Assembly (NCBI RefSeq): GCF_039654945.1
Contig: NW_027361940.1
Location: forward strand, 2,232,001 to 2,296,000
DNA: 64,000 nucleotides
Direction of reading: 5' to 3'
DNA from: Dendrobates tinctorius
Lineage: Eukaryota
Part shown: positions 3,181-62,762 of the stretch, piece after piece
How positions within the stretch are numbered: position 1 is the stretch's first letter
Layout: the number at the start of each line of letters is the position of its first letter
The notes under the pieces: generated by a model
Seen by the model: the letters and a program-made list of their open reading frames with translations, nothing else
Databases searched by the model: none
What the model was told of the DNA's origin: nothing
Program-made: the position numbers and the translations under genes

Positions 3181-3183
3181 CTC

Positions 3184-6100
3184 CTGTGGTCATGTGACGT
3201 CCGTCATGGCGGAGCTCACGCTCTGTATTACTTCCTCTCTGTCGCTGTGGTCATGTGACGCCGTCATGGCGGTGCTCGCGCTCTGTATTACTTCCTCTCT
3301 GTCGCTGTGGTCATGTGACGTCCGTCATGGCGGTGCTCGCGCTCTGTATTACTTCCTCTCTGTCGCTGTGGTCATGTGACGCCGTCATGGCGGTGCTCGC
3401 GCTCTGTATTACTTCCTCTCTGTCGCTGTGGTCATGTGACGCCGTCATGGCGGTGCTCGCGCTCTGTATTACTTCCTCTCTGTCGCTGTGGTCATGTGAC
3501 GCCCGTCATGGCGGTGCTCGCGCTCTGTATTACTTCCTCTCTGTCGCTGTGGTCATGTGACGTCCGTCATGGCGGTGCTCGCGCTCTTTATTACTTCCTC
3601 TCTGTCGCTGTGGTCATGTGACGCCCGTCATGGCGGTGCTCGCGCTCTTTATTACTTCCTCTCTGTCGTTGTGGTCATGTGACGCCCGTCATGGCGGTGC
3701 TCGTGCTCTGTATTACTTCCTCTCTGTCGCTGTGGTCATGTGACGCCCGTCATGGCGGTGCTCGCGCTCTTTATTACTTCCTCTCTGTCGTTGTGGTCAT
3801 GTGACGCCCGTCATGGCGGTGCTCGCGCTCTGTATTACTTCCTCTCTGTCACTGTGGTCATGTGACGCCCGTCATGGCGGTGCTCGCGCTCTGTATTACT
3901 TCCTCTCTGTCGTTGTGGTCATGTGACGCCCGTCATGGCGGTGCTCGCGCTCTGTATTACTTCCTCTCTGTCGCTGTGGTCATGTGACGCCCGTCATGAC
4001 GGTGCTCGCGCTCTTTATTACTTCCTCTCTGTCTTTGTGGTCATGTGACGTCCGTCATGGCGGTGCTCGCGCTCTGTATTACTTCCTCTCTGTCGCTGTG
4101 ATGTGACTTTCGTCATGGCGGTGCTCGCGCTCTGTATTACTTCCTCTCTGTCGTTGTGGTCATGTGACGTCCGTCATGGCGGTGCTCGCGCTCTGTATTA
4201 CTTCCTCTCTGTCGCTGTGGTCATGTGACGCCCGTCATGACGGTGCTCGCGCTCTTTATTACTTCCTCTCTGTCTTTGTGGTCATGTGACTTCCGTCATG
4301 GCGGTGCTCGCGCTCTGTATTACTTCCTCTCTGTCGCTGTGATGTGACTTCCGTCATGACGGTGCTCGCGCTCTGTATTACTTCCTCTCTGTCGTTGTGG
4401 TCATGTGACGTCCGTCATGGCGGTGCTCGCGCTCTGTATTACTTCCTCTCTGTCGCTGTGATGTGACTTCCGTCATGGCGGTGCTCGCGCTCTGTATTAC
4501 TTCCTCTCTGTCGCTGTGATGTGATTTCCGTCATGGCGGTGCTCGCGCTCTGTATTACTTCCTCTCTGTCGTTGTGGTCATGTGACGTCCGTCATGGCGG
4601 TGCTCTCGCTCTGTATTACTTCCTCTCTGTCGCTGTGGTCATGTGACTTCCGTCATGGCGGTGCTCGCGCTCTGTATTACTTCCTCTCTGTCGCTGTGGT
4701 CATGTGACGCCCGTCATGGCGGTTCTCGCGCTCTGTATTACTTCCTCTCTGTCGCTGTGGTCATGTGACTTCCGTCATGGCGGTGCTCGCGCTCTGTATT
4801 ACTTCCTCTCTGTCGCTGTGGTCATGTGACGTCCGTCATGGCGGTGCTCGCGCACTGTATTACTTCCTCTCTGTCGCTGTGGTCATGTGACGCCCATCAT
4901 GGCGATTCTCGCGCTCTGTATTACTTCCTCTCTGTCGCTGTGGTCATGTGACTTCCGTCATGGCGGTGCTCGCGCTCTGTATTACTTCCTCTCTGTCGCT
5001 GTGGTCATGTGACGTCCGTCATGGCGGTGCTCGCGCTCTGTATTACTTCCTCTCTTTCGCTGTGGTCATGTGACGCCCGTCATGGTGGTGCTCGCGCTCT
5101 GTATTACTTCCTCTCTATCGCTGTGGTCATGTGACGCCCGTCATGGAGGTGCTCGCTCTCTGTATTACTTCCTCTCTGTTGCTGTGATCATGTGACGCCC
5201 GTCATGGCGGCGCTCGCGCTCTGTATTACTCCCTCTCTGTCACTGTGATGTGACTCCCGTCATGGCGGTGCTCGCTCTCTGTATTACTTCCTCTCTGTCG
5301 CTGTGGTCATGTGACGCCCGTCATGGCGGTGCTCGCGCTCTGTATTACTTCCTCTCTGTCGCTGTGGTCATGTGACGCCCTTCATGGCGGTGCTCGCGCT
5401 CTGTATTACTTCCTCTTTGTCGCTGTGATGTGACGCCCGTCATGGCGGTGCTCCCGCTCTGTATTACTTCCTCTCTGTCGCTGTGGTCATGTGACGTCCG
5501 TCATGGCGGTGCTCGCGCTCTGTATTACTTCCTCTCTGTCGCTGTGGTCATGTGACGCCCGTCATGGCGGTTCTAGCGCTCTGTATTACTTCCTGTCTGT
5601 CGCTGTGGTCATGTGACGCCCGTCATGGCGGTGCTCGCGCTCTGTATTACTTCCTGTCTGTCACTGTGGTCATGTGACGCCCGTCATGGCGGTGCTCGCT
5701 CTGTATTACTTCCTCTCTGTCGCTGTGATGTGACGCCCGTCATGGCGGTGCTCGCGCTCTGTATTACTTCCTCTCTGTCGCTGTGATGTGACGTCCGTCA
5801 TGGCGGTGCTCGCGCTCTGTATTACTTCCTCTCTGTCGCTGTGATGTGACGCCCGTCATGGCGGTGCTCGCGCTCTGTATTACTTCCTCTCTGTCGCTGT
5901 GATGTGACGTCCGTCATGGCGGTGCTCGCGCTCTGTATTACTTCCTCTCTGTCGCTCTGATGTGACGCCCTTCATGGCGGTGCTCGCGCTCTGTATTACT
6001 TCCTCTCTGTCGCTGTGGTCATGTGACGCCCGTCATGGCCGTGCTTGCACTCGGTATTACTTCCTCTCTGTCGCTGTGGTCATGTGACTCCCGTCATGGC

Positions 6101-12100: not shown

Positions 12101-15100
12101 GGTCATGTGACGCCCATCATGGCTGTGCTCGCGCTCTGTAATACTTCCTGTCTGTCGTTGTGGTCATGTGACGCCCGTCATGGCGGTGCTCGCGCTCTGT
12201 ATTACTTCCTCTCTGTCGCTCTGATGTGACGCCCTTCATGGCGGTGCTAGCGCTCTGTATTACTTCCGGTCTGTCGCTGTGGTCATGTGACGCCCGTCAT
12301 GGCGGTGCTCACGCTCTGTATTACTTCCTCTCTGTCGCTGTGGTCATGTGACGCCCGTCATGGCGGTGCTTACGCTCTGTATTACTTCCTCTCTGTCGTT
12401 GTGGTCATGTGACGCCCGTCATGGCGGTACTCGCGCTCTGTATTACTTCCTCTCTGTCGCTGTGGTCATGTGACGCCCGTCATGGCGGTGCTCGCGCTCT
12501 GTATTACTTCCTCTCTGTCGCTGTGGTCATGTGACGCCCTTCATGGCGGTTCTCTCGCTCTGTATTACTTCCTCTTTGTCGCTGTGATCATGTGACGCCC
12601 GTCATGGCGGTACTCGCGCTCTGTATTACTTCCTCTCTGTCGCTGTGGTCATGTGACGCCCTTCATGGCGGTGCTCGCGCTCTGTATTACTTCCTCTCTG
12701 TCGTTGTGGTCATGTGACGCCCGTCATGGCGGTACTCGCGCTCTGTATTACTTCCTCTCTGTCGCTGTGGTCATGTTTCGCCCGTCATGGCGGTGCTCGC
12801 GCTCTGTATTACTTCCTCTCTGTCGCTGTGGTCATGTGACGCCCTTCATGGCGGTTCTCGCGCTCTGTATTATTTCCTCTTTGTCGCTGTGATGTGACGC
12901 CCGTCATGGCGGTACTCGCGCTCTGTATTACTTTCTCTCTGTCGCTGTGGTCATGTGACGTCCATCATGGCGGTGCTCGCGCTCTGTATTACTTCCTGTC
13001 TGTCGCTGTGGTCATGTGACGCCCGTCATGGCGGTGCTCGCGCTCTTTATTACTTCGTCTCTGTCGCTGTGGTCATGTGATGCCCTTCATGGCGGTGCTC
13101 GCGCTCTGTATTACTTCCTCTTTGTCGCTGTGATGTGACGCCCGTCATGGCGGTGCTCGCGCTCTGTGTTACTTCCTCTCTGTCGCTGTGGTCATTTGAC
13201 GTCCGTCATGGCGGTGCTCGCGCTCTGTATTACTTCCTCTCTGTCGCTGTGATGTGACGCCCTTCATGGCGGTGCTCGCGCTCTGTATTACTTCCTCTCT
13301 GTCGTTGTGGTCATGTGACGCCCGTCATGGCGGTACTCGCGCTCTGTATTACTTCCTCTCTGTCGCTGTGGTCATGTGACGCCCGTCATGGCGGTGCTCG
13401 CGCTCTGTATTACTTCCTCTCTGTCGTTGTGGTCATGTGACGCCCTTCATGGCGGTTCTCGCGCTCTGTATTACTTCCTCTTTGTCGCTGTGATCATGTG
13501 ACGCCCGTCATGGCGGTACTCGCGCTCTGTATTACTTCCTCTCTGTCGCTGTGGTCATGTGACGCCCTTCATGGCGGTGCTCGCGCTCTGTATTACTTCC
13601 TCTCTGTCGTTGTGGTCATGTGACGCCCGTCATGGCGGTACTCGCGCTCTGTATTACTTCCTCTCTGTCGCTGTGGTCATGTGACGCCCGTCATGGCGGT
13701 GCTCGCGCTCTGTATTACTTCCTCTCTGTCGCTGTGGTCATGTGACGCCCTTCATGGCGGTTCTCGCGCTCTGTATTATTTCCTCTTTGTCGCTGTGATG
13801 TGACGCCCGTCATGGCGGTACTCGCGCTCTGTATTACTTCCTCTCTGTCGCTGTGGTCATGTGACGCCCTTCATGGCGGTGCTCGCGCTCTGTATTACTT
13901 CCTCTCTGTCGCTGTGATCATGTGACGCCCGTCATGGCGGTGCTCGCGCTTAGTATTACTTCCTCTCTGTCACTGTGATGTGACTCCCGTCATGGCGGTG
14001 CTCGCTCTCTGTATTACTTCCTCTCTGTCGCTGTGGTCATGTGACGCCCGTCATGGCGGTGCTCGCGCTCTGTATTACTTCCTCTCTGTCGCTGTGGTCA
14101 TGTGACGCCCTTCATGGCGGTGCTCGCGCTCTTTATTACTTCCTCTTTGTCGCTGTGATGTGACGCCCGTCATGGCGGTGCTCCCGCTCTGTATTACTTC
14201 CTCTCTGTCGCTGTGGTCATGTGACGTCCGTCATGGCGGTGCTCGCGCTCTGTATTACTTCCTCTCTGTCGCTGTGGTCATGTGACGCCCGTCATGGCGG
14301 TTCTAGCGCTCTGTATTACTTCCTGTCTGTCGCTGTGGTCATGTGACGCCCGTCATGGCGGTGCTCGCGCTCTGTATTACTTCCTGTCTGTCACTGTGGT
14401 CATGTGACGCCCGTCATGGCGGTGCTCGCTCTGTATTATTTCCTCTCTGTCGCTGTGATGTGACGCCCGTCATGGCGGTGCTCGCGCTCTGTATTACTTC
14501 CTCTCTGTCGCTGTGATGTGACGTCCGTCATGGCGGTGCTCGCGCTCTGTATTACTTCCTCTCTGTCGCTGTGATGTGACGCCCGTCATGGCGGTGCTCG
14601 CGCTCTGTATTACTTCCTCTCTGTCGCTGTGATGTGACGTCCGTCATGGCGGTGCTCGCGCTCTGTATTACTTCCTCTCTGTCGCTCTGATGTGACGCCC
14701 TTCATGGCGGTGCTCGCGCTCTGTATTACTTCCTCTCTGTCGCTGTGGTCATGTGACGCCCGTCATGGCCGTGCTTGCACTCGGTATTACTTCCTCTCTG
14801 TCGCTGTGGTCATGTGACGCCCGTCATGGCGTGCTCGCTCTGTATTACTTCCTCTCTGTCGCTGTGGTCATGTGACGCCCATCATGGCTGTGCTCGCGCT
14901 CTGTATTACTTCCTGTCTGTCGTTGTGGTCATGTGACGCCCGTCATGGCGGTGCTCGCGCTCTGTATTACTTCCTCTCTGTCGCTCTGATGTGACGCCCT
15001 TCATGGCGATGCTCGCGCTCTGTATTACTTCCGGTCTGTCGCTGTGGTCATGTGACGCCCGTCATGGCGGTGCTCACGCTCTGTATTACTTCCTCTCTGT

Positions 15101-27100: not shown

Positions 27101-27575
27101 CGCTGTGGTCATGTGACGTCCGTTATGGCGGTGCTCACGCTCTGTATTACTTCCTCTCTGTCGTTGTGGTCATGTGACGTCCGTCATGGCGGTGCTCACG
27201 CTCTGTATTACTTCCTGTCTGTTGTTGTGGTCATGTGACGTCCGTCATGGCGGTGCTCACGCTCTGTATTACTTCCTCTCTGTCGCTGTGGTCATGTGAC
27301 GTCCGTTATGGCGGTGCTCGCGCTCTGTATTACTTCCTGTCTGTTGTTGTGGTTATGTGACGTCCGTCATGGCGGTGCTCACGCTCTGTATTACTTCCTC
27401 TCTGTCGTTGTGGTCATGTGACGTCCGTCATGGCGGTGCTCCCGCTCTGTATTACTTCCTCTCTGTCGTTGTGGTCATGTGACGTCCGTCATGGCGGTGC
27501 TCGCGCTCTGTATTACTTCCTGTCTGTTGTTGTGGTCATGTGACGTCCGTCATGGCGGTGCTCACGCTCTGTATT
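3184..27575. repeat. 61-bp CpG-rich satellite, ~390 copies, with 58-bp variant and higher-order repeats
   Basis: Unit GTCATGTGACGCCCGTCATGGCGGTGCTCGCGCTCTGTATTACTTCCTCTCTGTCGCTGTG with 6 CpG. Interrupted only at 21472-22107. Confidence 0.99.
21472..22107. mobile_element. Non-autonomous hAT-type DNA transposon (636 bp) inserted in the satellite
   Basis: 17-bp TIR CAGGGCTGTGGAGTCGG ... CCGACTCCACAGCCCTG. 8-bp TSD GTATTTCT / GTATTACT (1 mismatch). Subterminal GGAGTC repeats and an AT-rich non-coding core. Confidence 0.9.
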
Positions 27576-27612
27576 GTTGCCTCGACTCTCACTGTTTCCT
27601 TCTTCTCCACAG

Positions 27613-28239
27613 ATGTGCCGGCCGCTGAGTCCCTGCCTGTGACCGCCCGTCTTGGTAGGATGGAGGCGGCGGGCAGTGCGCTGTGCTGCCCGGACTGTGG
27701 GAGGAGATTCAGTCAGCGCTCCGGCCTGAATCGTCATCAGAGATCGCGCTGTAAGCTCAGCATCACTTTATCCTCCAGAGCTGCTTCAGCTAATGCCCCC
27801 TCGCCCCACAAGTGCAGTGTCTGCCAGGAGACATACAAGAGCGCCAGCGAGCTGCGGAGACACCTGAAGAGCCATGGCAGCGAGGAGGAGGAACGCTACC
27901 TGTGCTGCCAGTGCAGTCGCACATTCAACAGTAACACGTCCTTGGCGCGGCATCAGAGGACGCACAGTGCTGAGCGCCCCTTCACCTGTCCACAGTGCGG
28001 CAAGAGTTTCAAGAGCAGCGCCGTCCTACTCCGCCACCAGAGCGTGCACACCGGGGAGCAGCCATACCAGTGCGACGTGTGCACCAAGGGCTTCTCCCAG
28101 AAGAGCAGCCTCATCATCCACCTCCGCACACACGCCGGTCAGCACCCTTACACCTGCACTTCCTGCGAGCGAAGGTTCTGCTCCAAATCTGACCTGATCG
28201 CCCACGAGCGAAGTCACCGAGAGACGCTGTCCCACGAAG
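27613..28239 (+). CDS. ZNF exon 2 (ATG 27660), finger cassette 1: 6 fingers
   Basis: Acceptor TTCTTCTCCACAG|A, donor GAAG|GTGCCA. One C2HC finger (CPDC...HQRSRC) followed by five C2H2 fingers. Confidence 0.88.
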
Positions 28240-31200
28240 GTGCCACCTGTCACTACGTCTCGTGCTTTCTGCTCCGGTGTCTGGAGCGTAATGCTTTATG
28301 ATCTCCTCCTGCTGCAGGTTCCAACTCAACCGAGGAGGACGACGAGGATTTCATCAAGCTGAAGATCATGGACGTGTCATCCGATGACCTCAAAGGACCT
28401 TTGACCTCGTCCTCCTCCGAAGATGATGATGAGGAGAAGAGGAAGGAGCCGGCGGAAGTGGCAGACAGGATGACGGAGGTGAAGAAGGAGAAGGACAAGG
28501 ACATAGGTAATTATGAAATGCTTGATGGGAGTTTTCTTAACGGCTCCAGATGCTGGTGACATATTGGAGGGCGATGGCTGCCGGCCGAGCCGTGGAGGGC
28601 GATGGCTGCCGGCCGAGCCGTGGAGGGCGATGGCTGCCGGCCGAGCCGTGGAGGGCGATGGCTGCCGGCCGAGCCGTGGAGGGCGATGGCTGCCGGCCGA
28701 GCCGTGGAGGGCGATGGCTGCCGGCCGAGCCGTGGAGGGCGATGGCTGCCGGCCGAGCCGTGGAGGGCGATGGCTGCCGGCCGAGCCGTGGAGGGCGATG
28801 GCTGCCGGCCGAGCCGTGGAGGGCGATGGCTGGCCTGAGGTTACTTCCCTTTACTTCCTCCCTCCTTAGTGATTAGTAGACTGTGAGAGAGAAGAGGCTT
28901 ATCTTTCTCAAACAATGGCAGACAGTGTATGCAGAAGGAGCTGGCTGGATGATGAAGTCCTGTGATCACAGCGGCCTCTTCATTGAGTAAAGCTGTGTGT
29001 ATGCGGCTAATGGTGGCAGTGGCCAGGAGCGGCTGTAGCTGGCCTACGTCTGTGAGAGACCTACAAGAACATTCACCATTATTTTATGCAACAAATAATC
29101 GTTACAAAAAAGACGTGATATATGTGATGGTGCTGCGACTACTTATCTGCTCCGTCTATCTGTATCTGACCTGTAGACCCGTCACTTATCTGCTCCGTCT
29201 ATCTGTATCTGACCTGTTGACCCGTCACTTATCTGCTCCGTCTATCTGTATCTGACCTGTAGACCCGTCACTTATCCGCTCCGTCTATCTGTATCTGACC
29301 TGTTGACCCGTCACTTATCTGCTCCGTCTATCTGTATCTGACCTGTAGACCCGTCACTTATCCGCTCCGTCTATCTGTATCTGACCTGTAGACCTGTCAC
29401 TTATCCGCTCCGTCTATCTGTATCTGACCTGTAGACCCGTCACTTATCCGCTCCGTCTATCTGTATCTGACCTGTAGACCCGTCACTTATCCGCTCCGTC
29501 TATCTGTATCTGACCTGTAGACCCGTCACTTATCCGCTCCGTCTATCTGTATCTGACCTGTAGACCCGTCACTTATCCGCTCCGTCTATCTGTATCTGAC
29601 CTGTAGACCCGTCACTTATCCGCTCCGTCTATCTGTATCTGACCTGTAGACCCGTCACTTATCCGCTCCGTCTATCTGTATCTGACCTGTAGACCCGTCA
29701 CTTATCCGCTCCGTCTATCTGTATCTGACCTGTAGACCCGTCACTTATCCGCTCCGTCTATCTGTATCTGACCTGTAGACCCGTCACTTATCCGCTCCGT
29801 CTATCTGTATCTGACCTGTAGACTCGTCACTTATCCGCTCCGTCTATCTGTATCTGACCTGTAGACCCGTCACTTATCCGCTCCGTCTATCTGTATCTGA
29901 CCTGTAGACCCGTCACTTATCCGCTCCGTCTATCTGTATCTGACCTGTAGACCCGTCACTTATCCGCTCCGTCTATCTGTATCTGACCTGTAGACTCGTC
30001 ACTTATCCGCTCCGTCTATCTGTATCTGACCTGTAGACCCGTCACTTATCCGCTCCGTCTATCTGTATCTGACCTGTAGACCCGTCACTTATCCGCTCCG
30101 TCTATCTGTATCTGACCTGTAGACCCGTCACTTATCCGCTCCGTCTATCTGTATCTGACCTGTAGACCCGTCACTTATCCGCTCCGTCTATCTGTATCTG
30201 ACCTGTAGACCCGTCACTTATCCGCTCCGTCTATCTGTATCTGACCTGTAGACCCGTCACTTATCCGCTCCGTCTATCTGTATCTGACCTGTAGACCCGT
30301 CACTTATCCGCTCCGTCTATCTGTATCTGACCTGTAGACCCGTCACTTATCCGCTCTGTCTATCTGTATCTGACCTGTAGACTCGTCACTTATCCGCTCC
30401 GTCTATCTGTATCTGACCTGTAGACCCGTCACTTATCCGCTCCGTCTATCTGTATCTGACCTGTAGACCCGTCACTTATCCGCTCCGTCTATCTGTATCT
30501 GACCTGTAGACCCGTCACTTATCCGCTCCGTCTATCTGTATCTGACCTGTAGACCCGTCACTTATCCGCTCTGTCTATCTGTATCTGACCTGTAGACCCG
30601 TCACTTATCCGCTCCGTCTATCTGTATCTGACCTGTAGACCCGTCACTTATCCGCTCCGTCTATCTGTATCTGACCTGTAGACCCGTCACTTATCCGCTC
30701 CGTCTATCTGTATCTGACCTGTAGACTCGTCACTTATCCGCTCCGTCTATCTGTATCTGACCTGTTGACCCGTCACTTATCCGCTCCGTCTATCTGTATC
30801 TGACCTGTAGACCCGTCACTTATCCGCTCCGTCTATCTGTATCTGACCTGTAGACCCGTCACTTATCCGCTCCGTCTATCTGTATCTGACCTGTAGACCC
30901 GTCACTTATCCGCTCTGTCTATCTGTATCTGACCTGTAGACTCGTCACTTATCCGCTCCGTCTATCTGTATCTGACCTGTTGACCCGTCACTTATCCGCT
31001 CCGTCTATCTGTATCTGACCTGTAGACCCGTCTCTTATCCGCTCCGTCTATCTGTATCTGACCTGTAGACCCGTCACTTATCCGCTCCGTCTATCTGTAT
31101 CTGACCTGTAGACCCGTCACTTATCCGCTCCGTCTATCTGTATCTGACCTGTAGACCCGTCACTTATCCGCTCCGTCTATCTGTATCTGACCTGTAGACC

Positions 31201-34200
31201 CGTCACTTTTCAGAATGGAAGCTGTGATTCTGCTTTCTCGCTTTGTGTCCTCAGCGGAGAGATTTGAGCAGCAGCCGCACAGTGAAGATTTGGGGATGAA
31301 GAGGTCGGGAAGTGACTGCTCAATCTCAGAGGAGAAGAGCCCACCATGGATTAAGCAGCAGATGGGCTCCGGGAACCTGCAAGGAAATCTGCTGGTAGAA
31401 GATCAAGATGGCAGGGGCCACGGCAGTGAGGGAGACGGTGGTAAGTTGTACGGCGTCCACAGCGTCCAAACACATTGCAGTGGTGGATCTAGTGCTATAT
31501 TATAGTGTAACAGCAGAATAGCGACTGCAGCTCTGGAGGTGACTGGAGGATAAGACAAGATGTAACAGAGGAATAGTGACTGCAACTCTGGAGGTGACTG
31601 TAGAATAAGACATGATGTAGCAGCAGAATAGTGACTGCAGTCCTGGAGGTGACTGGAGGATAAGACACATGATGTAACAGCAGAATAGTGACGGCAGCTG
31701 TGGAGGTGACTGGAGGATATGACACATGATGTAAAAGCAGAATAGTGACGGCAGCTGTGGAGGTGACTGGAGGATAAGAGATGACCGATTAGTGATTTAC
31801 CCCCTTTATCATGCAGGGACATCTCCATCTGCACACCGTCTAATAAAGCCTGAAGAAGTGTCCGGAGATCCTCGGGACAGCGAGTGGAAGCCTCCTTTAC
31901 CGGGTAACAAAGGTCCTTGGAAAGTGGAGAGTCAAGACTCAAAGGACGATGGCGGCATCATCTGCCCGGACTGTGGTAAGACCTTCCGGTCTGCACTGCT
32001 GTTCACGGAGCACCAGAGGATGCACGCCGGAGGGCAGCCCTTCCCCTGCATTGAATGTGGCAAGAGCTTCAGCTACCGCGCCACCCTCCTCCGACACCAG
32101 AAGTCTCGCTGCCTGAATGATAACATGAAGGTCCCCAGTGTCAGCCGGGTCCTCACCGACACCTCGGAGCTGGTCCAGAAATGTGGCATCTGCACCGCGA
32201 AGTTCCGGTGCCTGAGCGAGCTGAGGAAGCATCTGACCAGTCACATGAACGGCGGGCGGTACACGTGCCAGGACTGCGGCCGCGACTTCAACTGTAACTA
32301 CTTCTTGGTGAGACACCAGAGGACGCACACGGGAGAGCAGCCCTTTAAGTGTAAGCTCTGCTGGCGAGGCTTCTCCCAGAGGGCGAGCCTGGTCATCCAC
32401 ATCCGGACACATACTGGGGAGCGGCCGTACATCTGCTTCGTCTGCGGCAGAGCCTTCTATTCCCGCTCGGCCATGCTACGACACCAGCGCAGCCGCCATG
32501 ATATCATGAAGAACTGGAAAGGTAGGTGCTGGCTGAGAGATGCCCGCTGCTGCTCATGTGCTGGACATGGTGTGGGGGGAATCTTGGTCACGTGTTGATT
32601 GTGGGGGTTATCATTTTGCGTAGCAGTAAGATTGGCGCAGGCTTCTGGTTGTAGATTAATGGCGACCCAGTGACCCAATATTTTTATTTTGCAGGTGATA
32701 AAAAAAGGACGCCGGGGAGTCACAAGATCGCTCAGGTGGGTGATACGGACCCTGCAAGGACTGACCCCTTACCCGACAGGACCCTGGCGGTGACCCCTGC
32801 TGCAGAAGGTCCTGTCCTAGAAAAGAGACCTGAGGTTCAGGATGAAGGGAAGGAAATGAACGGTGGCAGAGAGGGGCAGGGGTCACAGGAGACTGGTTAC
32901 GACTATCGCAACTTCCTCGCAGCGCAGGAAAGTCTGCTCTATAACGTCAGCATTCGTTCCTTAGAGTCCCGGCCCAGCTACAGGTGCGGCGTCTGTCAGG
33001 TGCTCTGCCAAGACTCTGGGGAGATGAAGAGGCACCTGAAGAGTCATAGCGGGGATCAGCGCTACTTGTGTCGCCAGTGCGGCCGCACCTTCACTAGTAA
33101 CTTTTACCTGGTGCGGCACCAGAGGACACACACCGGCGAGCGGCCCTTCACCTGTCCGCAGTGCAACAAGAGCTTCAAGTGCAGCTCCGTCCTCCTCCGC
33201 CACCAGAGGATCCACTCCCCCGATCAGCCCTATCAGTGTGAAGTGTGCACCAAGGGCTTCTCCCAGAAGACGAGTCTCATCATCCACCTGAGGACCCACA
33301 CCGGTGAGCGCCCCTATAGCTGTTGGATCTGTGGACGGAGCTTCTGCTCCCGCTCTGCACTGATGCGTCATGAGCAAAATCACCTTCTTGAAGGACAAGG
33401 TGCGTGTGACACCGCGGCCATAATCAAGCGTTCATTCCACGCAACCTTGTGCGTAAAATCCATGGATTCCTGGCTCATCTAGAGGGTTTACTAGATCCCT
33501 GGCCCATTTACCGGGTTTACTGTATCCCTGGCCCCTCTAGCGGGTTTACTGTATCCCTGGCCCCTCTAGCGGGTTTACCAGATCCCTGGCTCATCTAGCG
33601 GGTTTACTGTATCCCTGGCCCGTCTAGCAGGTTTACCAGATCCCTGGCTCATCTAGCGGGTTTACCAGATCCCTGGCTCATCTAGAAGGTTTACCAGATC
33701 CCTGGCTCATTTATCGGGTTTACTGTATCCCTGGCCCCTCTAGCGGGTTTACTGTATCCCTGGCCCCTCTAGCGGGTTTACCAGATCCCTGGCTCATCTA
33801 GTGGGTTTACTGTATCCCTGGCCCGTCTAGCGGGTTTACCAGATCCCTGGCTCATCTAGCGGGTTTACCAGATCCCTGGGTCATCTAGCGGGTTTACTAT
33901 ATCCCTGGCTCATCTAGCGGGTTTACTATATCCCTGCTCATCTAGCGGGTTTACCGGATCCCTGGCTCATCTTGTAGGTTTACTATATCCCTGGCTCATC
34001 TAGCAGGTTTACCAGATCCCTGGCATATCTAGCGGGTTTACTATATCCCTGGCTCATTTAGCGGGTTTACCAGATCCCTGGCTCATCTAGCGGGTTTACC
34101 GGATCCCTGGCCCATCTAGCGGGTTTACCGGATCCCTGGCCCATCTAGCGGGTTTACTGTGTCCCTGGCCCATCTAGGGGCTTTACCGGATCCCTGGCTC

Positions 34201-37200
34201 ATCAAGGGGGTTTACCGGATCCCTGGCTCATCAAGCGGGTTTACCAGATCCCTGGCTCATCTAGCGGGTTTACCGGATCCCTGGCTCATCAAGTGGGTTT
34301 ACAATATCCCTGGCCCATCTAGCGGGTTTACTATATCCCTGGCCCATCTAGCGGGTTTACCGGATCCCTGGCTCATCTAGCGGGTGTACTATATCCCTGG
34401 CCCATCTAGCGGGTTTACCGGATCCCTGGCTCATCTAGCGGGTTTACCGGATCCCTGGCTCATCTAGCGGGTTTACCGGATCCCTGGCTTATCTAGCGGG
34501 TGTACTATATCCCTGGCCCATCTAGAGGGTTTACCGGATCCCTGGCTCATCTAGAGGGTTTACCGGATCCCTGGCTCATCTAGCGGGTTTACCGGATCCC
34601 TGGCTCATCTAGAGGGTTTACCGGATCCCTGGCTCATCTAGCGGGTTTACCAGATCCCTGGCTCATCTAGCGGGTTTACTATATCCCTGGCCCATCTAGC
34701 GGGTTTACTATATCCCTGGCCCATCTAGCGGGTTTACTATATCCCTGGCTCATCTAGCGGGTTTACTATATCCCTGGCCCATCTAGCGTGCTTACCGGAT
34801 CCCTTGCCCGTCTAGCGTGCTTACCGGATCCCTGGCCCATCTATCGGGTTTACCGGATCCCTGGCTTATCTAGCTGGTTTACTGGATCCCTGGTTATCGG
34901 GTTTACTGGATCCCTTGGTCATCTAGTGGGTTTAATAGATCCCTGGCCTCCTGGGGGTTTTACCGGATCCCTGGCTCATCTAGCGGGTTTACCGGATCCC
35001 TGGCTCATCTAGCGGGTTTACCAGATCCCTGGCTCATCTAGCGGGTTTACCATATCCCTGGCCCATCTAGCGGGTTTACTATATCCCTGGCCCATCTAGC
35101 GGGTTTACTATATCCCTGGCTCATCTAGCGGGTTTACTATATCCCTGGCCCGTCTAGCGTGCTTACCGGATCCCTTGCCCGTCTAGCGTGCTTACCGGAT
35201 CCCTTGCCCGTCTAGCGGGTTTACCGGATCCCTGGCTTATCTAGCTGGTTTACTGGATCCCTGGTTATCGGGTTTACTGGATCCCTTGGTCATCTAGTGG
35301 GTTTAATAGATCCCTGGCCTCCTGGGGGTTTTACCGGAATCCTGGCCTTCTAGCGGGTTTACCGGATCCCTGGCCCATCTAGTGGGTTTACCGGATCCCT
35401 GGCCCATCTAGTGGGTTTACCGGATCCCTGGCCCATCTAGTGGGTTTACCGGATCCCTGGCCCATCTAGTGGGTTTACCGGATCCCTGACCTCCAGCGGG
35501 GTTACCGTATCGTTGGCCCACCTAGCGAGTTTACCGGATCCCTGGCCTCTTAGTGGGCTTTTTTCCTATATTTTAAACTTAGTGTTAGCTTCTTTAGACC
35601 GTTGGCTGTAACAGATGAGCTCGGGGGCGTGAGAAGGATTGGACACCTCATTCTCATTGCTCGCTCCTTTTGATGCCTGAGTGATGAGCTTCCTTGAGGT
35701 GCCGGGTAGTGGATTAGTCTTCTCGCCTCATTAATAAGACATACGTCTCTGACAAGCTGAGGGCTCGTGTCTATATAGGGGAGCGGGTGATATGTTCTCG
35801 TATTTCTGTAATAACTAACACCTCTGGGGGTCTAGTGGGTAAATTTAATTCCATTCCTGGGTCTCGTAGGATAACTTAATTGCGCCCCTGGTGGTCTGGT
35901 GTGTCAATCTATGTACCATTGCTTGGTCTCCTAACACCTTGGTGTACTCGTGGGCTAATAGAACAGCCCTGGTGAGCCAGTAAGTACAGTGCCTTGCAAA
36001 AGTATTCGGCCCCCTGGAACTTTCCAACCTTTTCCCACATATCATGCTTCAAACATAAAGATACCAAATGTAAATTTTTGGTGAAGAATCGACAACAAGT
36101 GGGACACAATTGTGAAGTTGAAAGAAATTTATTGGTTATTTTAAATTTTTGTGGAAATTCAAAAACTGAAAAGTGGGGCGTGCAATATTATTCGGCCCCT
36201 GTAACTTAATACTTTGTTGTGCCCCTTTTGCTGCGATTACAGCTGCAGTCGCTTGGGGTATGTCTCTATCAGTTTTGTACATCGAGAGACTGAAATTCTC
36301 GCCCATTCTTCCTTGGCAAACAGCTCGAGCTCAGTGAGGTTGGATGGAGATCGCTTGTGAACAGCAGTTTTCAGCTCTTTCCACAGATTCTCGATTGGAT
36401 TCAGGTCTGGACTGTGACTTGGCCATTCTAACACCTGGATACGTTTATTTGTGAACCATTCCATTGTAGATTTTGCTTTATGTTTGGGATCATTGTCTTG
36501 TTGGAAGACAAATCTCCGTCCCAGTCTCAGGTCTTTTGCAGACTCCAACAGGTTTTTTTCAAGAATGGTCCTGTATTTGGCTCCATCCATCTTCCCATCA
36601 ATTATAACCATCTTCCCTGTCCTGCTGAAGAAAAGCAGGCCCAAACCATGATGCTGCCACCACCATGTTTGACAGTGGGGATGGTGTGTTTAGGGTGATG
36701 AGCTGTGTTGCCTTTACGCCAAACATATTGTTCGACATTGTTACCAAAAAGTTTGATTTTGGATTCATCTGACCAGAGCACCTTCTTCCACATGTTTGGT
36801 GTCTCCCAGGTGGCTTGTTGCAAACTTTAAACGACACTTTTTATGGATATCTTTGAGAAATGGCTTTCTTCTTTCCACTCTTCCATAAAGGCCAGATTTG
36901 TGCAGTGTACGACTGATTATTGTCCTATGGACAGACTGTCCCACCTCAGCTGTAGATCTCTGCAGTTCATCCAGAGTGATCATGGGCCTCTTGGCTGCAT
37001 CTCTGATCAGTCTTCTCCTTGTTTGAGATGAAAGTTTAGAGGGACGGCCGGGTCTTGGTAGATTTGCAGTGGTATGATACTCCTTCCATTTCAATATGAT
37101 CGATTGCACAGTGCTTGGGATGTTTAAAGTTTTGGAAATCATTTTGTATCTAAATCCGGCTTTAAACTTCTCCACAACAGTATCACGGACCTGCCTGCTG

Positions 37201-38730
37201 TGTTCCTTAGTCTTCATGATGCTCTCTGTGCATCAAACAGAACCTTGAGACTATCACAGAGCAGGTGCATTTATGATTACACACAGGTGGATTATATTTA
37301 TCATCATTAGTCATTTAGGACAACATTGGATCATTCAGAGATCCACAATGAACTTCTGGAGTGAGTTTGCTGCACTGAAAGTAAAGGGGCTGAATAATAT
37401 TGCACGTCCCACTTTTCAGTTTTTGTATTTCCACAAAAATTTAAAATAACCAATAAATTTCATTCAACTTCACAATTGTGTCCCACTTGTTGATTCTTCA
37501 CCAGAAATTTACATTTGGTATCTTTATGTTTGAAGCATGATACGTGGGAAAAGGCTGAAAAGTTCCAGGGGGCTGAATACTTTTGCAAGGCACTGTATTG
37601 TGACTACAGCCCTGCTGGTCTAGTGGAGATGTAGCTGAGCACCGTATTTGCGGTGCAGTGGTTTGTATGTCAGTCCGTTATGTCATCTTTACTGGGACGC
37701 GTAATGGTGACTGGTGCGTCATGTAAGAGACCAGGACAAACACAAATGTAAGTTGTTGTTTTATGTTTTTTTTTGTTTTCCTTTTTAAGGTTCGGAGAAA
37801 ATCTGCAAGAAAGGCGACAAACGGGAGAAGGAGAAACCTTCTGTGAAGCAGGAGCCCGGGTACCAGGAGCGAGACGGGAAGCAGCCACATACTGATAAAG
37901 GCAATGGGCCCCAGGAAACGCACGAGGAAGAACGGAATAGTGATGGCAATCATGGAGATGTTAAAACTGAAGTCCCAAGCGAGGAGAAGTCGCCACGGAT
38001 GGAGCGGGAAGCGTGCAGCAATTGCATCTGTCCAGTCTGTGGGAAGTTCTTCCGTTCTGAGTCTCTCCTCCATGAGCACCAGAAAATACACGAGGACAGC
38101 CCGTGCTATGTCTGCCCCGACTGTGGGAACAGCTTTGGTCATCGTTCGTCTCTCCTCCGCCACCGAAACTTGCACTGCAGACAGCAGCCGGGAATCGTCT
38201 ACCCTGATCCGGTGATCTCTGTCTCTCCTGGGCAGCAAGTCCATAAGTGCGGCATCTGTCACCTGAACTTCTCCAGCTCCAAAGATCTGAGGCGACACCT
38301 GAGGAGCCACAAAGGAGACGGCACGTTCATGTGCCGCGAGTGCGGCCAGACCTTCAACAGCAACTTCTCACTGGTGCGGCACCAGAGGACGCACACCGGC
38401 GAGCGGCCCTTCACCTGTCTGCAGTGCAACAAGAGCTTCAAGTGCAGCTCCGTCCTCCTCCGCCACCAGAGGATCCACACCGGGGAGCAGCCATACCAGT
38501 GCGACGTGTGCCAGCGCTGCTTCTCCCAGAAGCCTAGTCTCATCAACCACCTGCGGACACACACAGGAGAGCGACCCTTCAGCTGCCAGGTCTGTGGCCG
38601 GAGCTTCTGCTCTAGGTCCGCCCGGATGCGACACGAGCACACAAACCACCAACATCACGCTAAGAACAAAGAGGTGGCGGTGTCTGAGGCTGCGGACGGA
38701 GGGGTCGGCGAGCTGCTGCCCCCGCTGTGA
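27660..38730 (+). CDS. Multi-cassette C2H2 zinc-finger protein, spliced join(27660-28239,28318-28506,31255-31440,31817-32521,32695-33399,37790-38730), ~1101 aa, 24 fingers
   Basis: All five junctions are GT-AG with pyrimidine tracts and are phase 1. The joined frame is open for 3306 nt. Kozak context AGGATGG at 27660 and TGA at 38728-38730. Canonical HTGE(R/Q)P(F/Y) linkers. Confidence 0.85.
28318..28506 (+). CDS. ZNF exon 3, acidic/Ser-rich linker
   Basis: Acceptor CTCCTCCTGCTGCAG|G, donor ATAG|GTAATT. Encodes [24 protein letters not shown]...[14 protein letters not shown]. Confidence 0.8.
28565..28832. repeat. 28-bp GC-rich minisatellite, ~9.5 identical copies (intron 3)
   Basis: Unit TGGAGGGCGATGGCTGCCGGCCGAGCCG. 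Confidence 0.97.
29139..31207. repeat. 43-bp minisatellite, ~48 copies (intron 3)
   Basis: Unit ACCCGTCACTTATCCGCTCCGTCTATCTGTATCTGACCTGTAG; very homogeneous. Confidence 0.98.
31255..31440 (+). CDS. ZNF exon 4, low-complexity linker
   Basis: Acceptor TTTGTGTCCTCAG|C, donor GTG|GTAAGT. 186 bp, phase 1-1, open frame. Confidence 0.78.
31506..31782. repeat. ~56-58-bp minisatellite, ~5 copies (intron 4)
   Basis: Unit approximately TGTAACAGCAGAATAGTGACTGCAGCTCTGGAGGTGACTGGAGGATAAGACATGA. Related degenerate copies lie at ~39050-39170. Confidence 0.9.
31817..32521 (+). CDS. ZNF exon 5, finger cassette 2: 6 fingers
   Basis: Acceptor TTTATCATGCAG|G, donor AAAG|GTAGGT. 705 bp. Confidence 0.88.
32695..33399 (+). 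CDS. ZNF exon 6, finger cassette 3: 5 fingers
   Basis: Acceptor TTTTTATTTTGCAG|G, donor CAAG|GTGCGT. 705 bp. Confidence 0.88.
33464..35558. repeat. 29-bp minisatellite, ~70 copies (intron 6)
   Basis: Unit GATCCCTGGCTCATCTAGCGGGTTTACC(A/G), with CTAT/CTGT variants. Confidence 0.97.
35987..37595 (-). mobile_element. Full-length Tc1 transposon (1609 bp, ~210-bp TIRs), frameshifted transposase
   Basis: TA|CAGTGCCTTGCAAAAGTATTC ... GAATACTTTTGCAAGGCACTG|TA. Transposase pieces [29 protein letters not shown] and [11 protein letters not shown] are split over three frames. Confidence 0.96.
36200..37217 (-). pseudogene. Tc1 DDE transposase pseudogene
   Basis: ORFs 36765-37217, 36602-36823 and 36237-36644 are consecutive fragments of one transposase. 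Confidence 0.92.
37790..38730 (+). CDS. ZNF exon 7 (terminal), finger cassette 4: 7 fingers
   Basis: Acceptor TTTTCCTTTTTAAG|G, in frame with ORF 37843-38730; stop TGA. Confidence 0.88.
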
Positions 38731-39192: not shown

Positions 39193-39198
39193 AATAAA
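39193..39198 (+). terminator. Candidate polyadenylation signal of the ZNF gene
   Basis: AATAAA about 460 bp after the stop codon; no other support. Confidence 0.35.
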
Positions 39199-43729: not shown

Positions 43730-44713
43730 GGCAAAGGAAGATAAATCTAGCCTGTAGTGACTATAAAAGGTAGAAGGCGAAGACCAGGTTGCGGACTTAC
43801 ATATTAAATCAATCTAGACATCTGCTCTTTCAGCCCAGGAGGAAGATACGGCTTGAGCAGAATGTGCCCTCACGCCCTGCGGTGGGTCTTCTTTTTTCCG
43901 AATATGCCAGTGTAATCGCGTCTCTGATCCATCGAGACAGTGTGCCTCTTGTGACTCTAGACCCCTTCTTGTTACCCTGGAAGGAGACAAAAAGAGCCCT
44001 GCTCTGCCTCCAGGGCCTAGTTCTATCTAGATAGGCTAAGACAGCTCTCTTTACGTCTAAGGTGTGATACCTTTCCTCCTCTGGTGTTGCCGGGCTATAA
44101 TAAAAGGTGGGAAGGTAGATTTCTTGGGATCTATGGAATTTAGTAGCCCTTTTAGGGAGATAGGATGGGTCTGTCTTTAACACTATTCTGTCCTGAAATA
44201 TTGACAGGAAGGGGGTATCTACTGACAAGGCCTGGAGATCACTCACTCTGCTGATACCAAGGCTACCAATAAGGCGGTCTTTAATGAAACGCACTTTATT
44301 GAGGCTGAGTGTAAGGGCTCGAATGGGGCCTGTGTGAAAGCATCTAGGACTAAGCTGAGGTCCCAAGGTAGTATCTGAGGCATATGAACAGGGTCTGGTC
44401 ACTGGCAAGCTGAGATAAATCTAGCTACCCATCTGTTGCCTGCAATGTCATAACTATACAAGGCCCCCAGAGCAGAAACTTGGACTTTTAGAGTGTTAAC
44501 TGAAAGCCCTAACCCATGCCCTTTCTGCAGGAACTCTAAGATAGTAGTGATAGGCACCCCGCTGGAAAGGCCCGCTGAATGGAAAGTTAGAAATTTCTTC
44601 CACACCGTGGTGTAGATTTTGGTTGTGGCTTCTTTCCTACTATGTAAGAGGGTATTAATTAGATTATCTGAGAATTCTCTTAGTTTCAGTAGCTGCCTCT
44701 CAAATTCCATGCC
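43730..44713 (-). pseudogene. DIRS tyrosine recombinase
   Basis: SRKEATTKIYTTVWKKF, SRVSDLQAL, HTLDVKRA, RAHSAQAVSSSWA, ATWSSPSTFYSHYRLDL. Frameshifts and a stop are present. Confidence 0.88.
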
Positions 44714-46146
44714 GTGAGGCGTAGGCCCTTGACCTGAGGATGGTAAGAGGGTCCTTGCAAGAGTAGGTTCTGATCCCAAGGGAGGATCCATGGGTCGGAG
44801 ACTGACATGGCCCTCAGCCATGAAAACCACGGCCTCTTGGGCCAAAACGGGGCTATTAAGATGACTCTTGCTCCTTCCTCCCTTATCTTTCTGATGACAA
44901 TCGGTAACAGTATCATCGGAGGGAAGGCGTAGGCCTGGTGAAATGTCCATGGGGTTTGAAGGGCGTCAAGTATATCTGGATTGTCTGTTCTGTACAGTGA
45001 AGCAAACCTTTCGACCTGCCTGTTGTCCCTTGTAGCGAACAGGTCTATCTCCGGCATGCCCCACATGACCGTTATCATCCTGAAGATATGCCGACTGAGC
45101 ACCCATTCCCCTTGATGCAGGGTATGGCGACTGAGAAAGTCTGCTCTGGAGTTGTCCACCCCTCTGACGTGCAGGGCTGATAGGAACAGGAGATGCTTTT
45201 CGGCCAGATTTAGGATTTTTTCCGCGATAGACATGAGGCTCTGATCGTGTGCCTCCTTGGTTTAGGTACGCCACTGAGGTAGTGTTGTCTGACTGAATCC
45301 TTGTATGGGTTCCATGCAGCTGTGGGAGAAAATTACATATGACGTGATATATAGCCTTTAACTCCCTCGCCTTTGACGAATTCTCGGCTTCGGCCTCGGA
45401 CCACTGTCCCTGAACTATGTTATCTAGATGTGCTCCCCACCCAAACGGGTTAACATCCGTAGTAACTATATTGGAGGGATCCACCACCCATGGGACTTCT
45501 CCCGAGAGGTTGTTTGGATCTTGCCACCACGCCAGGGAGTCAATTACCTCCGATGGTAGGGACATTATGCCCTCCAGCTGTCCCTGCAGTCTCGTCTTCT
45601 TGCAAGATGGCCCACTGTAACCTTCTAGAATGGAACTGGGCCCACTGAAATGCAGGGATACATGACATTAGGGAGCCAAGTAAGGACATGCCCTCCCTCA
45701 AGTACATTCTAGGACTGCTGATTGCTGTACGCACTTTATTAATTATAGCTACTTTTTTGAGACCAGAAACAAGGGGAGTAAAAGCCCTTTCCCCTTTGAT
45801 CTTCCGAAACCTCTACAAGAACGTGTTTGGACAATAGGCCTTTAATTTCCAACTCTAACGCCTCCTGCTGAGCCTGGGACTTTAGAGAAGTCAATAGGAA
45901 GGAGTCCGGAGGACTCTGGACAAACTCTAATCTTAAGCCAGATGTCATGATGTTAATTGCCCAGGAGTTACCTGTTATTGCCCTCCATTGATGGCAGAAA
46001 TGCAATAACCTGCCACCCACCGGTAGGTCAGCGCTATCGGGCTTTATCTCCAGATTTGAAGGGACGTTTACCAAACAGGTTTCCCTTCTGTTTGAAGTCT
46101 TTATTGCTCCAACGGTCTTGGGTTCTATAATCCTTCCTTTTGCCAA
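44686..46146 (-). pseudogene. DIRS pol (RT N-terminus, RNase H, methyltransferase-like domain), RT core deleted
   Basis: PVGGRLLHFCHQW..GFYS, then VTTDVNPFGWGAH..ARELKA..IQSDNTTSVAYLNQGGTRS, then IDLFAT..AYAFPP..VILIAPFWPKRPWF. No YLDD region is present. Confidence 0.88.
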
Positions 46147-60068: not shown

Positions 60069-60327
60069 TTAAGGGTTCTTATGCCTCAGCCATGCTTTAT
60101 TAATGGTGCTGAGGAATAAGGGGATAGCACCCCCCAGTGTCGGATTTTTCCGGGGTCTCGGCTGCCTGGGGTAGCTGAGACCTCAGAGAACATGATTCGG
60201 GTCGCTCTTTACCGACCCCAGTGTTGCGATCGCCGTTATTCACTGAATAATGGAAACCGCAAAAAAAAGTCAGATTTTCCATTTAATTTCTCACTTCTCT
60301 GGTGTGATCACACATCAGAGATGGGGT

Positions 60328-62562
60328 CCCCCGAGCCCCCCACGATACCTTATGTACTGGATCAGTAGTCCCCCGAGCCCCCCACGATACCTTATGTACT
60401 GGATCAGTAGTCCCCCGAGCCCCCCACGATACCTTATGTACTGGATCAGTAGTCCCCCGAGCCCCCCACGATACCTTATGTACTGGATCAGTAGTGCCCC
60501 GAGCCCCCCACGATACCTTATGTACTGGATCAGTAGTCCCCCGAGCCCCCCACGATACCTTATGTACTGGATCAGTAGTCCCCCGAGCCCCCCACGATAC
60601 CTTATGTACTGGATCAGTAGTCCCCCGAGCCCCCCACGATACCTTATGTACTGGATCAGTAGTCCCCCGAGCCCCCCACGATACCTTATGTACTGGATCA
60701 GTAGTGCCCCGAGCCCCCCACGATACCTTATGTACTGGATCAGTAGTCCCCCGAGCCCCCCACGATACCTTATGTACTGGATCAGTAGTCCCCCGAGCCC
60801 CCCACGATACCTTATGTACTGGATCAGTAGTGCCCCGAGCCCCCCACGATACCTTATGTACTGGATCAGTAGTCCCCCGAGCCCCCCACGATACCTTATG
60901 TACTGGATCAGTAGTCCCCCGAGCCCCCCACGATACCTTATGTACTGGATCAGTAGTGCCCCGAGCCCCCCACGATACCTTATGTACTGGATCAGTAGTG
61001 CCCCGAGCCCCCCACGATACCTTATGTACTGGATCAGTAGTCCCCCGAGCCCCCCACGATACCTTATGTACTGGATCAGTAGTCCCCCGAGCCCCCCACG
61101 ATACCTTATGTACTGGATCAGTAGTCCCCCGAGCCCCCCACGATACCTTATGTACTGGATCAGTAGTCCCCCGAGCCCCCCACGATACCTTATGTACTGG
61201 ATCAGTAGTCCCCCGAGCCCCCCACGATACCTTATGTACTGGATCAGTAGTCCCCCGAGCCCCCCACGATACCTTATGTACTGGATCAGTAGTCCCCCGA
61301 GCCCCCCACGATACCTTATGTACTGGATCAGTAGTGCCCCGAGCCCCCCACGATACCTTATGTACTGGATCAGTAGTCCCCCGAGCCCCCCACGATACCT
61401 TATGTACTGGATCAGTAGTCCCCCGAGCCCCCCACGATACCTTATGTACTGGATCAGTAGTGCCCCGAGCCCCCCACGATACCTTATGTACTGGATCAGT
61501 AGTCCCCCGAGCCCCCCACGATACCTTATGTACTGGATCAGTAGTCCCCCGAGCCCCCCACGATACCTTATGTACTGGATCAGTAGTGCCCCGAGCCCCC
61601 CACGATACCTTATGTACTGGATCAGTAGTGCCCCGAGCCCCCCACGATACCTTATGTACTGGATCAGTAGTCCCCCGAGCCCCCCACGATACCTTATGTA
61701 CTGGATCAGTAGTCCCCCGAGCCCCCCACGATACCTTATGTACTGGATCAGTAGTCCCCCGAGCCCCCCACGATACCTTATGTACTGGATCAGTAGTCCC
61801 CCGAGCCCCCCACGATACCTTATGTACTGGATCAGTAGTCCCCCGAGCCCCCCACGATACCTTATGTACTGGATCAGTAGTCCCCCGAGCCCCCCACGAT
61901 ACCTTATGTACTGGATCAGTAGTCCCCCGAGCCCCCCACGATACCTTATGTACTGGATCAGTAGTGCCCCGAGCCCCCCACGATACCTTATGTATTGGAT
62001 CAGTAGTCCCCCGAGCCCCCCACGATACCTTATGTACTGGATCAGTAGTCCCCCGAGCCCCCCACGATACCTTATGTACTGGATCAGTAGTCCCCCGAGC
62101 CCCCCACGATACCTTATGTACTGGATCAGTAGTCCCCCGAGCCCCCCACGATACCTTATGTACTGGATCAGTAGTGCCCCGAGCCCCCCACGATACTTTA
62201 TGTACTGGATCAGTAGTCCCCCGGCCCCCCACGATACCTTATGTACTGGATCAGTAGTCCCCCCGAGCCCCCCACGATACCTTATGTACTGGATCAGTAG
62301 TGCCCCGGCCCCCCACGATACCTTATGTACTGGATCAGTAGTGCCCCGAGCCCCCCACGATACTTTATGTACTGGATCAGTAGTGCCCCGAGCCCCCCAC
62401 GATACCTTATGTACTGGATCAGTAGTCCCCCGAGCCCCCCACGATACCTTATGTACTGGATCAGTAGTGCCCCGGCCCCCCACGATACCTTATGTACTGG
62501 ATCAGTAGTGCCCCGAGCCCCCCACGATACCTTATGTACTGGATCAGTAGTGCCCCGGCCCC
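60328..62562. repeat. 42-bp minisatellite, ~53 copies
   Basis: Unit CCCCCGAGCCCCCCACGATACCTTATGTACTGGATCAGTAGT with essentially one C/G dimorphism. Confidence 0.99.
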
Positions 62563-62762
62563 CTTCCTTCCTCCGGCAGAAAGAAGATGGCGGGCGCATG
62601 CACCCGGCGACCGAGGAGAATTTTCTCATTGGCTGCTGGGTTTTGATTACTGTGATATCAAAGTGATCAAACCCCCTGAATATTAGTAAATGTGGCAGCA
62701 CTCCAGTTACCTCCCCCGGTTCTCTTTATCATTTTTTAATAATTTTTTTTAGTTTTTTGCAG

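Follow-up and report, generated by a model that had tools for sequence, protein, structure and literature searches.

Four related finger cassettes in one predicted frog zinc-finger gene, and their origin by exon duplication

How does one stretch of a frog genome come to carry four related sets of zinc fingers, and do those sets belong to one protein or to several? The question is raised by a 64,000-nt stretch of the Dendrobates tinctorius genome (positions 2,232,001 to 2,296,000 of contig NW_027361940.1; hereafter the window, with positions counted from its first letter), in which four plus-strand open reading frames (ORFs), at 27540-28301, 31792-32598, 32670-33482 and 37843-38730, carry related sets of C2H2 fingers. 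Most vertebrate poly-zinc-finger genes hold all of their fingers in one exon and evolve fast. Our reading, to which we assign a probability of about 80%, is that the window contains a single plus-strand protein-coding gene that runs from approximately 2.75 to 39.2 kb, is the orthologue of Eleutherodactylus coqui 'zinc finger protein 11-like', and has as its product a Krüppel-type C2H2 protein of 1,101 residues (3,306 nt of coding sequence, counted by script on the joined exons).

Exon ends were read from the sequence and then verified by script; all exons lie on the plus strand. Exon 2 (27613-28239), with a strong acceptor at 27613, the main ATG at 27660 and a phase-1 donor, contributes 580 nt from that ATG and carries the first cassette of fingers. 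Exons 3 (28318-28506, 189 nt) and 4 (31255-31440, 186 nt) are linkers without a Pfam domain, the former acidic and serine-rich and the latter containing a conserved W-I/V-x-QQM motif that is also present in the X. tropicalis (Xenopus tropicalis), Rhinophrynus and E. coqui proteins. Exons 5 (31817-32521) and 6 (32695-33399), both of 705 nt and phase 1-1, carry cassettes 2 and 3, and exon 7 (37790-38730), as read from the sequence, carries cassette 4, the C-terminal tail and the TGA stop, with the first AATAAA 3′ of it at 39193. Every acceptor is an AG with a pyrimidine tract, every donor is a GT, the coding introns from intron 2 onward are in phase 1, and exons 3-6, the four internal ones, each have a length divisible by three; these phases and sizes agree with those given in an earlier description of the locus made from its letters alone (the sequence-only reading). 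The equal size of exons 5 and 6 is a coincidence, since the corresponding E. coqui exons measure 690 and 723 nt.

Counted by regular expression, there are six fingers in exon 2, six in exon 5, five in exon 6 and seven in exon 7, for a total of 24. With the fingers of the complete exon-7 cassette lettered A to G, exon 2 holds B-G, exon 5 holds A-D, F and G (finger E being lost), and exon 6 holds C-G plus degenerate remnants of A and B. The cassettes align along the whole finger region, with 45-49% identity to the exon-7 cassette and the zinc ligands among the invariant columns. When the seven fingers of a partial Ascaphus truei protein were included, 30 of 31 fingers had their nearest neighbour at their own position, and mean identity was 0.63 within positions versus 0.37 between them. 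The four paralogous, ordered finger sets of the sequence-only reading, their grouping by position and the absence of finger E from exon 5 are thereby borne out. Its description of finger B as ending in H...C in exons 2, 5 and 7 holds for the first two, where the second His is replaced by Arg and a Cys follows one residue on (H-x4-C), but not for exon 7, where, as in Ascaphus, a normal H-x3-H is followed by a Cys. The Pfam family zf-C2H2 (PF00096) matches the four cassettes in order with E-values of 6e-34, 2e-26, 3e-23 and 3e-32, and zf-H2C2_2 (PF13465) matches them at 1e-22 to 1e-32, identifying tandem C2H2 arrays, while domains of any other type are absent; in the alignment, TGEKP-like linkers (HTGERPF or HTGEQPY) separate fingers D and E, E and F, and F and G.

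That these cassettes reach a common mRNA is shown by transcript contigs. Exons 5 and 6 are contained in 18 runs from 8 studies, in assemblies of 34-124 million letters, which is transcriptome size, and the contigs of four runs (two organism labels, four studies) were compared with 31209-33463, a stretch without long arrays. GT..AG joints at 31440>31817 (exon 4 to exon 5) and 32521>32695 (exon 5 to exon 6) were found in all four runs, with zero depth over intron 5; the RNA is therefore spliced, with cassettes 2 and 3 in the same molecule. (A processed retrocopy present in DNA runs was considered as the source of these contigs, and was rejected in view of the transcriptome-size assemblies, of 62-115 million letters, and the uncovered intron 5.) Upstream of exon 4, a 1,760-nt contig has 279 letters and then a match to exon 6 (33225-33313) with 14 mismatches, and a 1,763-nt contig from the second organism has 273 letters upstream of exon 4. 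The gene model predicts such an arrangement: exon 2 at 28059-28147 differs from exon 6 at 33225-33313 in 14 places and is followed by 92 nt of exon 2 and the 189 nt of exon 3, and 92 + 189 nt, minus the 2 letters (AG) that fit both sides, equals the 279 of the contig. The RNA contigs contain exon 2 from 28059 to 28239 spliced to exon 3. At the other end, an 875-nt contig present in three runs matches exon 6 at 33186-33401, continues for 538 letters, and then matches exon 6 at 33067-33187 with 12 mismatches; the model predicts 12 differences between exon 7 at 38330-38450 and exon 6 at 33067-33187, beginning 540 nt into exon 7, and these 540 nt, minus the 2 letters (GT) that fit both sides, give 538, exactly 37792-38329. 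The break at 33187 is spanned by a 148-nt contig with zero mismatches. Because both the letter counts (279 and 538) and the mismatch counts (14 and 12) equal those of the model, exons 2-3-4-5-6 and exons 6-7 are joined as predicted: the product is, as the sequence-only reading had proposed, a single mRNA and not that of four genes. Of the 15 listed differences between the transcripts of the two organisms, 11 are synonymous in the proposed frame, and the four replacements all fall in linker regions, none altering a finger.

The layout is shared with other frogs. When 1.84 billion representatives were compared with a profile built from the four window cassettes and that of Ascaphus, the five long proteins that matched the full profile in a few stretches were all from frogs; the cassette hallmarks were found in no other protein among the best 150 profile matches, below which non-frog relatives with a single cassette would rank. 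The orthologues are those of E. coqui (XP_066444635.1 and XP_066444634.1, 1100 and 1119 residues, an automatic RefSeq model), Leptobrachium (A0A8C5MWX0, 1112 residues, four cassettes), Rhinophrynus (KAM4796281.1, 1433 residues, five cassettes), Hymenochirus (KAG8453132.1, 749 residues, three cassettes), Bombina (XP_053561658.1, 'zinc finger protein 25', 679 residues, at least two cassettes), X. tropicalis (XENTR_v10007452, 888 residues, three cassettes, from a region-limited search) and Ascaphus truei (FKM82_021360, a partial protein with at least one cassette, from a word search). A word search with exon 7 returned mostly generic poly-zinc-finger proteins, among which only the Ascaphus protein (P0118) was distinct, at 53% identity and 92% coverage, and region-limited word searches (A-B-spacer-C) returned only Ascaphus, Bombina and X. 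tropicalis, with a length window that hides longer relatives.

The E. coqui gene, like that of the window, has seven exons and phase-1 introns (its internal exons are 210, 186, 690 and 723 nt), and its protein is collinear with our model (1119/1100 versus 1101 residues), with the same finger losses in each cassette and 48-76% amino-acid identity per exon. The collinear order, the equal exon and phase structure and a one-to-one correspondence of cassettes in the tree described below place the two in one orthologue group; they differ in intron 1 (657 nt in E. coqui versus approximately 24.7 kb, mostly satellite, in the window) and intron 5 (6.1 kb versus 173 nt). The other frog orthologues share the A-G cassette, repeated one to five times, on phase 1-1 exons wherever DNA was read (including an 831-nt exon in Hymenochirus and a 900-nt exon at 2775-3674 in Ascaphus), and differ in the number and completeness of cassettes, the basal lineages having mostly intact A-G units. 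The gene is already in databases as automatic, uncharacterised models in several frog annotations, and is not new as sequence. In Bombina, where the model covers 278 kb, a separate zinc-finger gene model of 311 residues lies 2 kb downstream and could be one more cassette of that gene, detached by annotation. The orthologous loci of E. coqui and Hymenochirus lie 4.7 and 5.8 Mb, respectively, from the end of a chromosome, which points to conservation of this near-terminal location.

Comparison with E. coqui also moves the start of the gene some 25 kb upstream of where the sequence-only reading had put it. The block at 2701-2900 shares 75% identity with the exon-1 region of E. coqui, and the ORF MTVTSSRCFSSMKPR that opens at 2831 matches the N terminus (MTVTSSRCFCSMKPR…) of E. 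coqui isoform X1; together, these 200 nt and the N-terminal match place the putative exon 1 and its promoter at approximately 2.75-2.89 kb. The conserved segment (2730-2887, plus strand) contains a CACGTG, a perfect cAMP response element (CRE), TGACGTCA, at 2838-2845 and the ATG at 2831, and is followed by a GT donor at 2888. Isoform X1 reads in frame from its exon-1 ATG into the main ORF, whereas a 1-nt indel puts the exon-1 ATG of the window out of frame, so that the main start is the ATG at 27660, equivalent to isoform X2. The exon-1 ATG of the window would open a short upstream ORF that ends at 27642 or overlaps the main start, depending on the exon-2 acceptor used.

Where the cassettes came from was addressed with a maximum-likelihood tree of 26 cassettes. 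Cassettes 1-4 of the window each pair with the equally ranked cassette of E. coqui (support 100/99, 100/99, 95/98 and 100/99, respectively). A clade of cassettes without finger E (support 91/91) unites exon 5 with cassette 2 of E. coqui and Leptobrachium, cassette 3 of Rhinophrynus, and cassette 1 of X. tropicalis and Hymenochirus, and so covers Neobatrachia, Pelobatoidea and Pipoidea; cassette 1 of Bombina forms a further clade with the middle pipoid and Leptobrachium cassettes (81/87). Since these clades cross lineages, several of the duplications predate the split of these frog lineages. The finger and cassette trees support the intragenic exon duplication proposed by the sequence-only reading; the duplications are ancient and common to Anura, and no peculiarity of one genome. 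An ancestral seven-finger unit (A-B, a spacer and C-D-E-F-G), carried on a symmetric phase 1-1 exon, was duplicated within its gene early in frog history, and four of the copies are kept here, spliced into one mRNA with two short acidic linker exons.

Neobatrachian cassettes 1, 3 and 4 cluster with one another (87/96), which suggests later re-duplication or homogenisation by gene conversion. Homogenisation is supported by local tracts whose DNA identity is 94-98%: over finger E, exons 6 and 7 (33109-33190 and 38372-38453) are 98% identical, with an exact run of 58 nt, and at the E/F linker, exons 2 and 7 (28047-28082 and 38476-38511) are 94% identical, with an exact run of 36 nt, against a background of 60-75% between cassette exons. 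Such short near-identical tracts look like gene conversion between the exons of one gene. Between cassettes, synonymous divergence (dS) is 0.67-1.85 and the ratio of nonsynonymous to synonymous divergence (dN/dS) is 0.19-0.39; between the cassette exons and those of the E. coqui orthologue, dS is 0.45-0.64 and dN/dS 0.31-0.36, and for linker exon 4 dN/dS is 0.64. These values indicate that all four cassettes are under purifying selection.

What the four heads might recognise can be approached through their helix contact residues (positions -1, +2, +3 and +6), which in nearly all cassettes and species are H-S-S/T-R in finger B, C/S-Y/F-F/Y/S-R in D, CSVR in E, Q-T/S-S-I in F and SSAR in G, with an Arg at +6 in fingers D, E and G. 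Because most fingers keep nearly the same contacts in every cassette, the comparison suggests that the four heads are similar in specificity. Among solved structures, the closest are tandem C2H2 arrays bound to DNA (ZNF568, PRDM9, Aart and CTCF). Given the canonical TGE(R/Q)P linkers through fingers D-G and the conserved contacts, each head is predicted to bind DNA, recognising a similar motif of approximately 12-15 bp via fingers D-G, and the whole protein would engage several copies of the motif simultaneously, whether these are clustered, repeated or brought together by looping; we regard this prediction as evenly balanced between right and wrong. Two observations speak against it. Many of the contact positions are occupied by small or hydrophobic residues (C, S, V, A, F, Y, I), an uncommon choice for reading specific bases, and RNA, protein or DNA shape could instead be the ligand; and cassettes 1 and 2 have drifted at some contacts (finger G of cassette 1, for example, has SSDA), which may make the heads non-equivalent.

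The richness of the contact positions in these residues is also the starting point for an alternative that we consider unlikely, in which the heads bind RNA or proteins, or serve as a scaffold, rather than reading DNA sequence, and the repeats are kept for avidity to a non-DNA ligand. The weaker Pfam matches include zf-C2H2_jaz and zf-met, which are double-stranded RNA-binding finger types, and the fingers have been conserved over a very long time, unlike those of the fast-evolving, DNA-targeting KRAB zinc-finger proteins. The jaz and zf-met scores, however, are far under those of zf-C2H2, and the canonical linkers through D-G, the arginines at +6 and the best solved relatives, which are DNA complexes, argue for DNA. 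A more specific form of DNA binding, in which the four heads together would read a tandemly repeated motif in multivalent fashion, possibly that of chromosome-end minisatellites including the gene's own intron-3 array, is compatible with four similar heads, but we think it quite unlikely to be correct. If it were, the protein would have a role in the organisation or regulation of repeat arrays, perhaps with self-regulation as well, and a dedicated binder of such arrays would have persisted in frogs from an early point in their history.

Several points weigh against the single-gene reading itself. The contigs come from Logan assemblies, for which the label of RNA is a guess; no single contig reaches from exon 2 to exon 7, let alone covers the whole mRNA, because identical runs of 36-58 bases shared by the paralogous cassettes break the assembly graph; the joins of exon 2 to 3, 3 to 4 and 6 to 7 are deduced from piece lengths and paralogue mismatches; and the 5′ end (the use of exon 1, and an exon-2 acceptor at either 27613 or 27659) rests on sequence comparison. 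Even within one gene, the cassettes could mainly be alternative exons, such that the functional products would be a set of proteins with one to three heads and not the four-head protein. In-frame skipping is possible because exons 3-6 are all multiples of three and phase 1-1, any internal subset being removable; contigs, moreover, lose rare variants, and three of the joints are absent from the listing. Yet exon skipping was not seen among the joints listed in the contigs of the four runs, where GT..AG occurs only at the two constitutive ones, and the two E. coqui RefSeq isoforms differ at the 5′ end only, all of which leaves a mainly skipped set of cassettes very unlikely. Hardly credible is the wrong fusion, into one model, of four or several tandem zinc-finger genes or pseudogenes: each cassette ORF does continue for 20-27 codons past its donor to a stop, the tail past the exon-5 donor (AGHGVGGIL) is still like the exon-7 C terminus (a hint that the duplicated unit was once a terminal exon), and Bombina is annotated with a second zinc-finger gene 2 kb downstream, but spliced contigs join cassettes 1-2-3 and 3-4 in three to four independent runs with no depth over intron 5, the phases are conserved in four frog lineages, and all of the cassettes are under purifying selection.

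The single four-cassette gene resembles KRAB zinc-finger proteins in its Krüppel-type C2H2 fingers and TGEKP-like linkers, and its top generic matches are of that kind. It is not, however, a variant of such proteins. No KRAB, SCAN or BTB domain was found by Pfam in the exon translations, searched exon by exon, or in the linker regions of the orthologues, and KRAB (PF01352) is absent from the precomputed Pfam lists of three of the latter (P0118, P0211 and P0289); Pfam likewise found no known effector domain in the protein. Its fingers are distributed over exons 2, 5, 6 and 7 instead of one 3′-terminal exon, and it evolves slowly, with conserved contact residues. According to Björklund et al. 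(2006, PMC1553488), 78% of the long C2H2 repeats in human are confined to one exon, and duplication can affect whole multi-finger units, such as one of six fingers. The present gene stands out by the whole-exon duplication of a fixed seven-finger unit, kept since before the frog lineages diverged and with its contacts preserved.

Separated or duplicated finger clusters are also known from HIVEP/Schnurri (with its two ZAS finger pairs), REPIN1/RIP60, SALL4 and MZF1, which serve as leads only, and the idea for HIVEP and REPIN1 is that two or more heads engage similar sites or loop DNA. The window protein is like these in having several clusters in one polypeptide, a likeness drawn without a specific sequence relationship, and unlike them in that its clusters are clear paralogues of a seven-finger unit, each on a symmetric exon. 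The ESM Atlas gave only generic non-KRAB zinc-finger clusters, with a feature match to those of REPIN1, ZNF775 and ZNF467, and a literature search found no paper on the gene or its layout. The gene contains a fixed module of seven fingers, copied by in-frame duplication of its entire exon and kept in two to five copies from Bombina to neobatrachian frogs. Here a C2H2 array grew by the duplication of exons and not by slippage inside one, and its copies have undergone exchange that resembles gene conversion. It would be a natural example of transcription-factor design for avidity, and the X. tropicalis orthologue makes it a tractable one. Automatic annotation has split or truncated the gene in several frogs, and such models can be corrected with the cassette and phase rules.

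Tandem repeats occupy much of the noncoding part of the gene. Intron 1 is filled by a 61-bp satellite of approximately 400 copies (3184-27575, TRF; 24.4 kb), which has a strong T-over-A skew and the core TCATGTGACGC…ATGGCGG. The core matches the intron-1 repeat of E. coqui at 23 of 28 nt (score 30, versus a mean of 16.6 and a maximum of 26 after shuffling). Because it occurs there within the 118-bp repeats, two to three copies of them, of an intron of only 657 nt, the satellite looks like a lineage-specific expansion of an intronic element. Intron 3 contains a 43-bp minisatellite of 48 copies (29141-31208, TRF; 2,068 bp), and the same intron of E. coqui contains a 46-bp array of 45 copies (2,071 bp, at 12421-14491 of the E. 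coqui locus, L002), with 81% identity over two units. Since the arrays are homologous across species and each is 95-98% homogeneous internally, they are best described as a long-lived intronic array in concerted evolution, of near-equal total length in two frogs that have diverged to a dS of approximately 0.5. The neighbourhood comparison with E. coqui, confined to the gene and its promoter, recovered the promoter block, the intron-1 repeat core and the intron-3 minisatellite as homologous.

The 57-bp repeat of intron 4 (31506-31779) reaches summed contig depths of up to ~78,000 in the RNA assemblies, with many rearranged joints, and belongs to an abundant transcribed repeat family; a related 55-bp repeat lies in E. 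coqui intron 4 (L002 15183-15424). Intron 6 holds a 29-bp minisatellite of 72 copies (33464-35546, TRF) and, on the minus strand at 36240-37217, the remnant of a Tc1/Sleeping-Beauty-like transposase (Pfam HTH_Tnp_Tc3_2, 4e-23; HTH_SB, 5e-15; DDE_3, 5.5e-15) that is frameshifted, its reading frames split. Beyond the gene, a run of minus-strand ORFs of 135-199 residues at 43830-46146 looks like a decayed retroelement, although three of them had no Pfam match at E ≤ 0.001. Further arrays flank the gene on both sides: 25 copies of a 30-bp unit just upstream of the promoter (1845-2603), 53 copies of a 42-bp unit at 60326-62563, and 82 copies of a 15-bp, TTAGGG-containing unit from 62769 to the end of the window at 64000.

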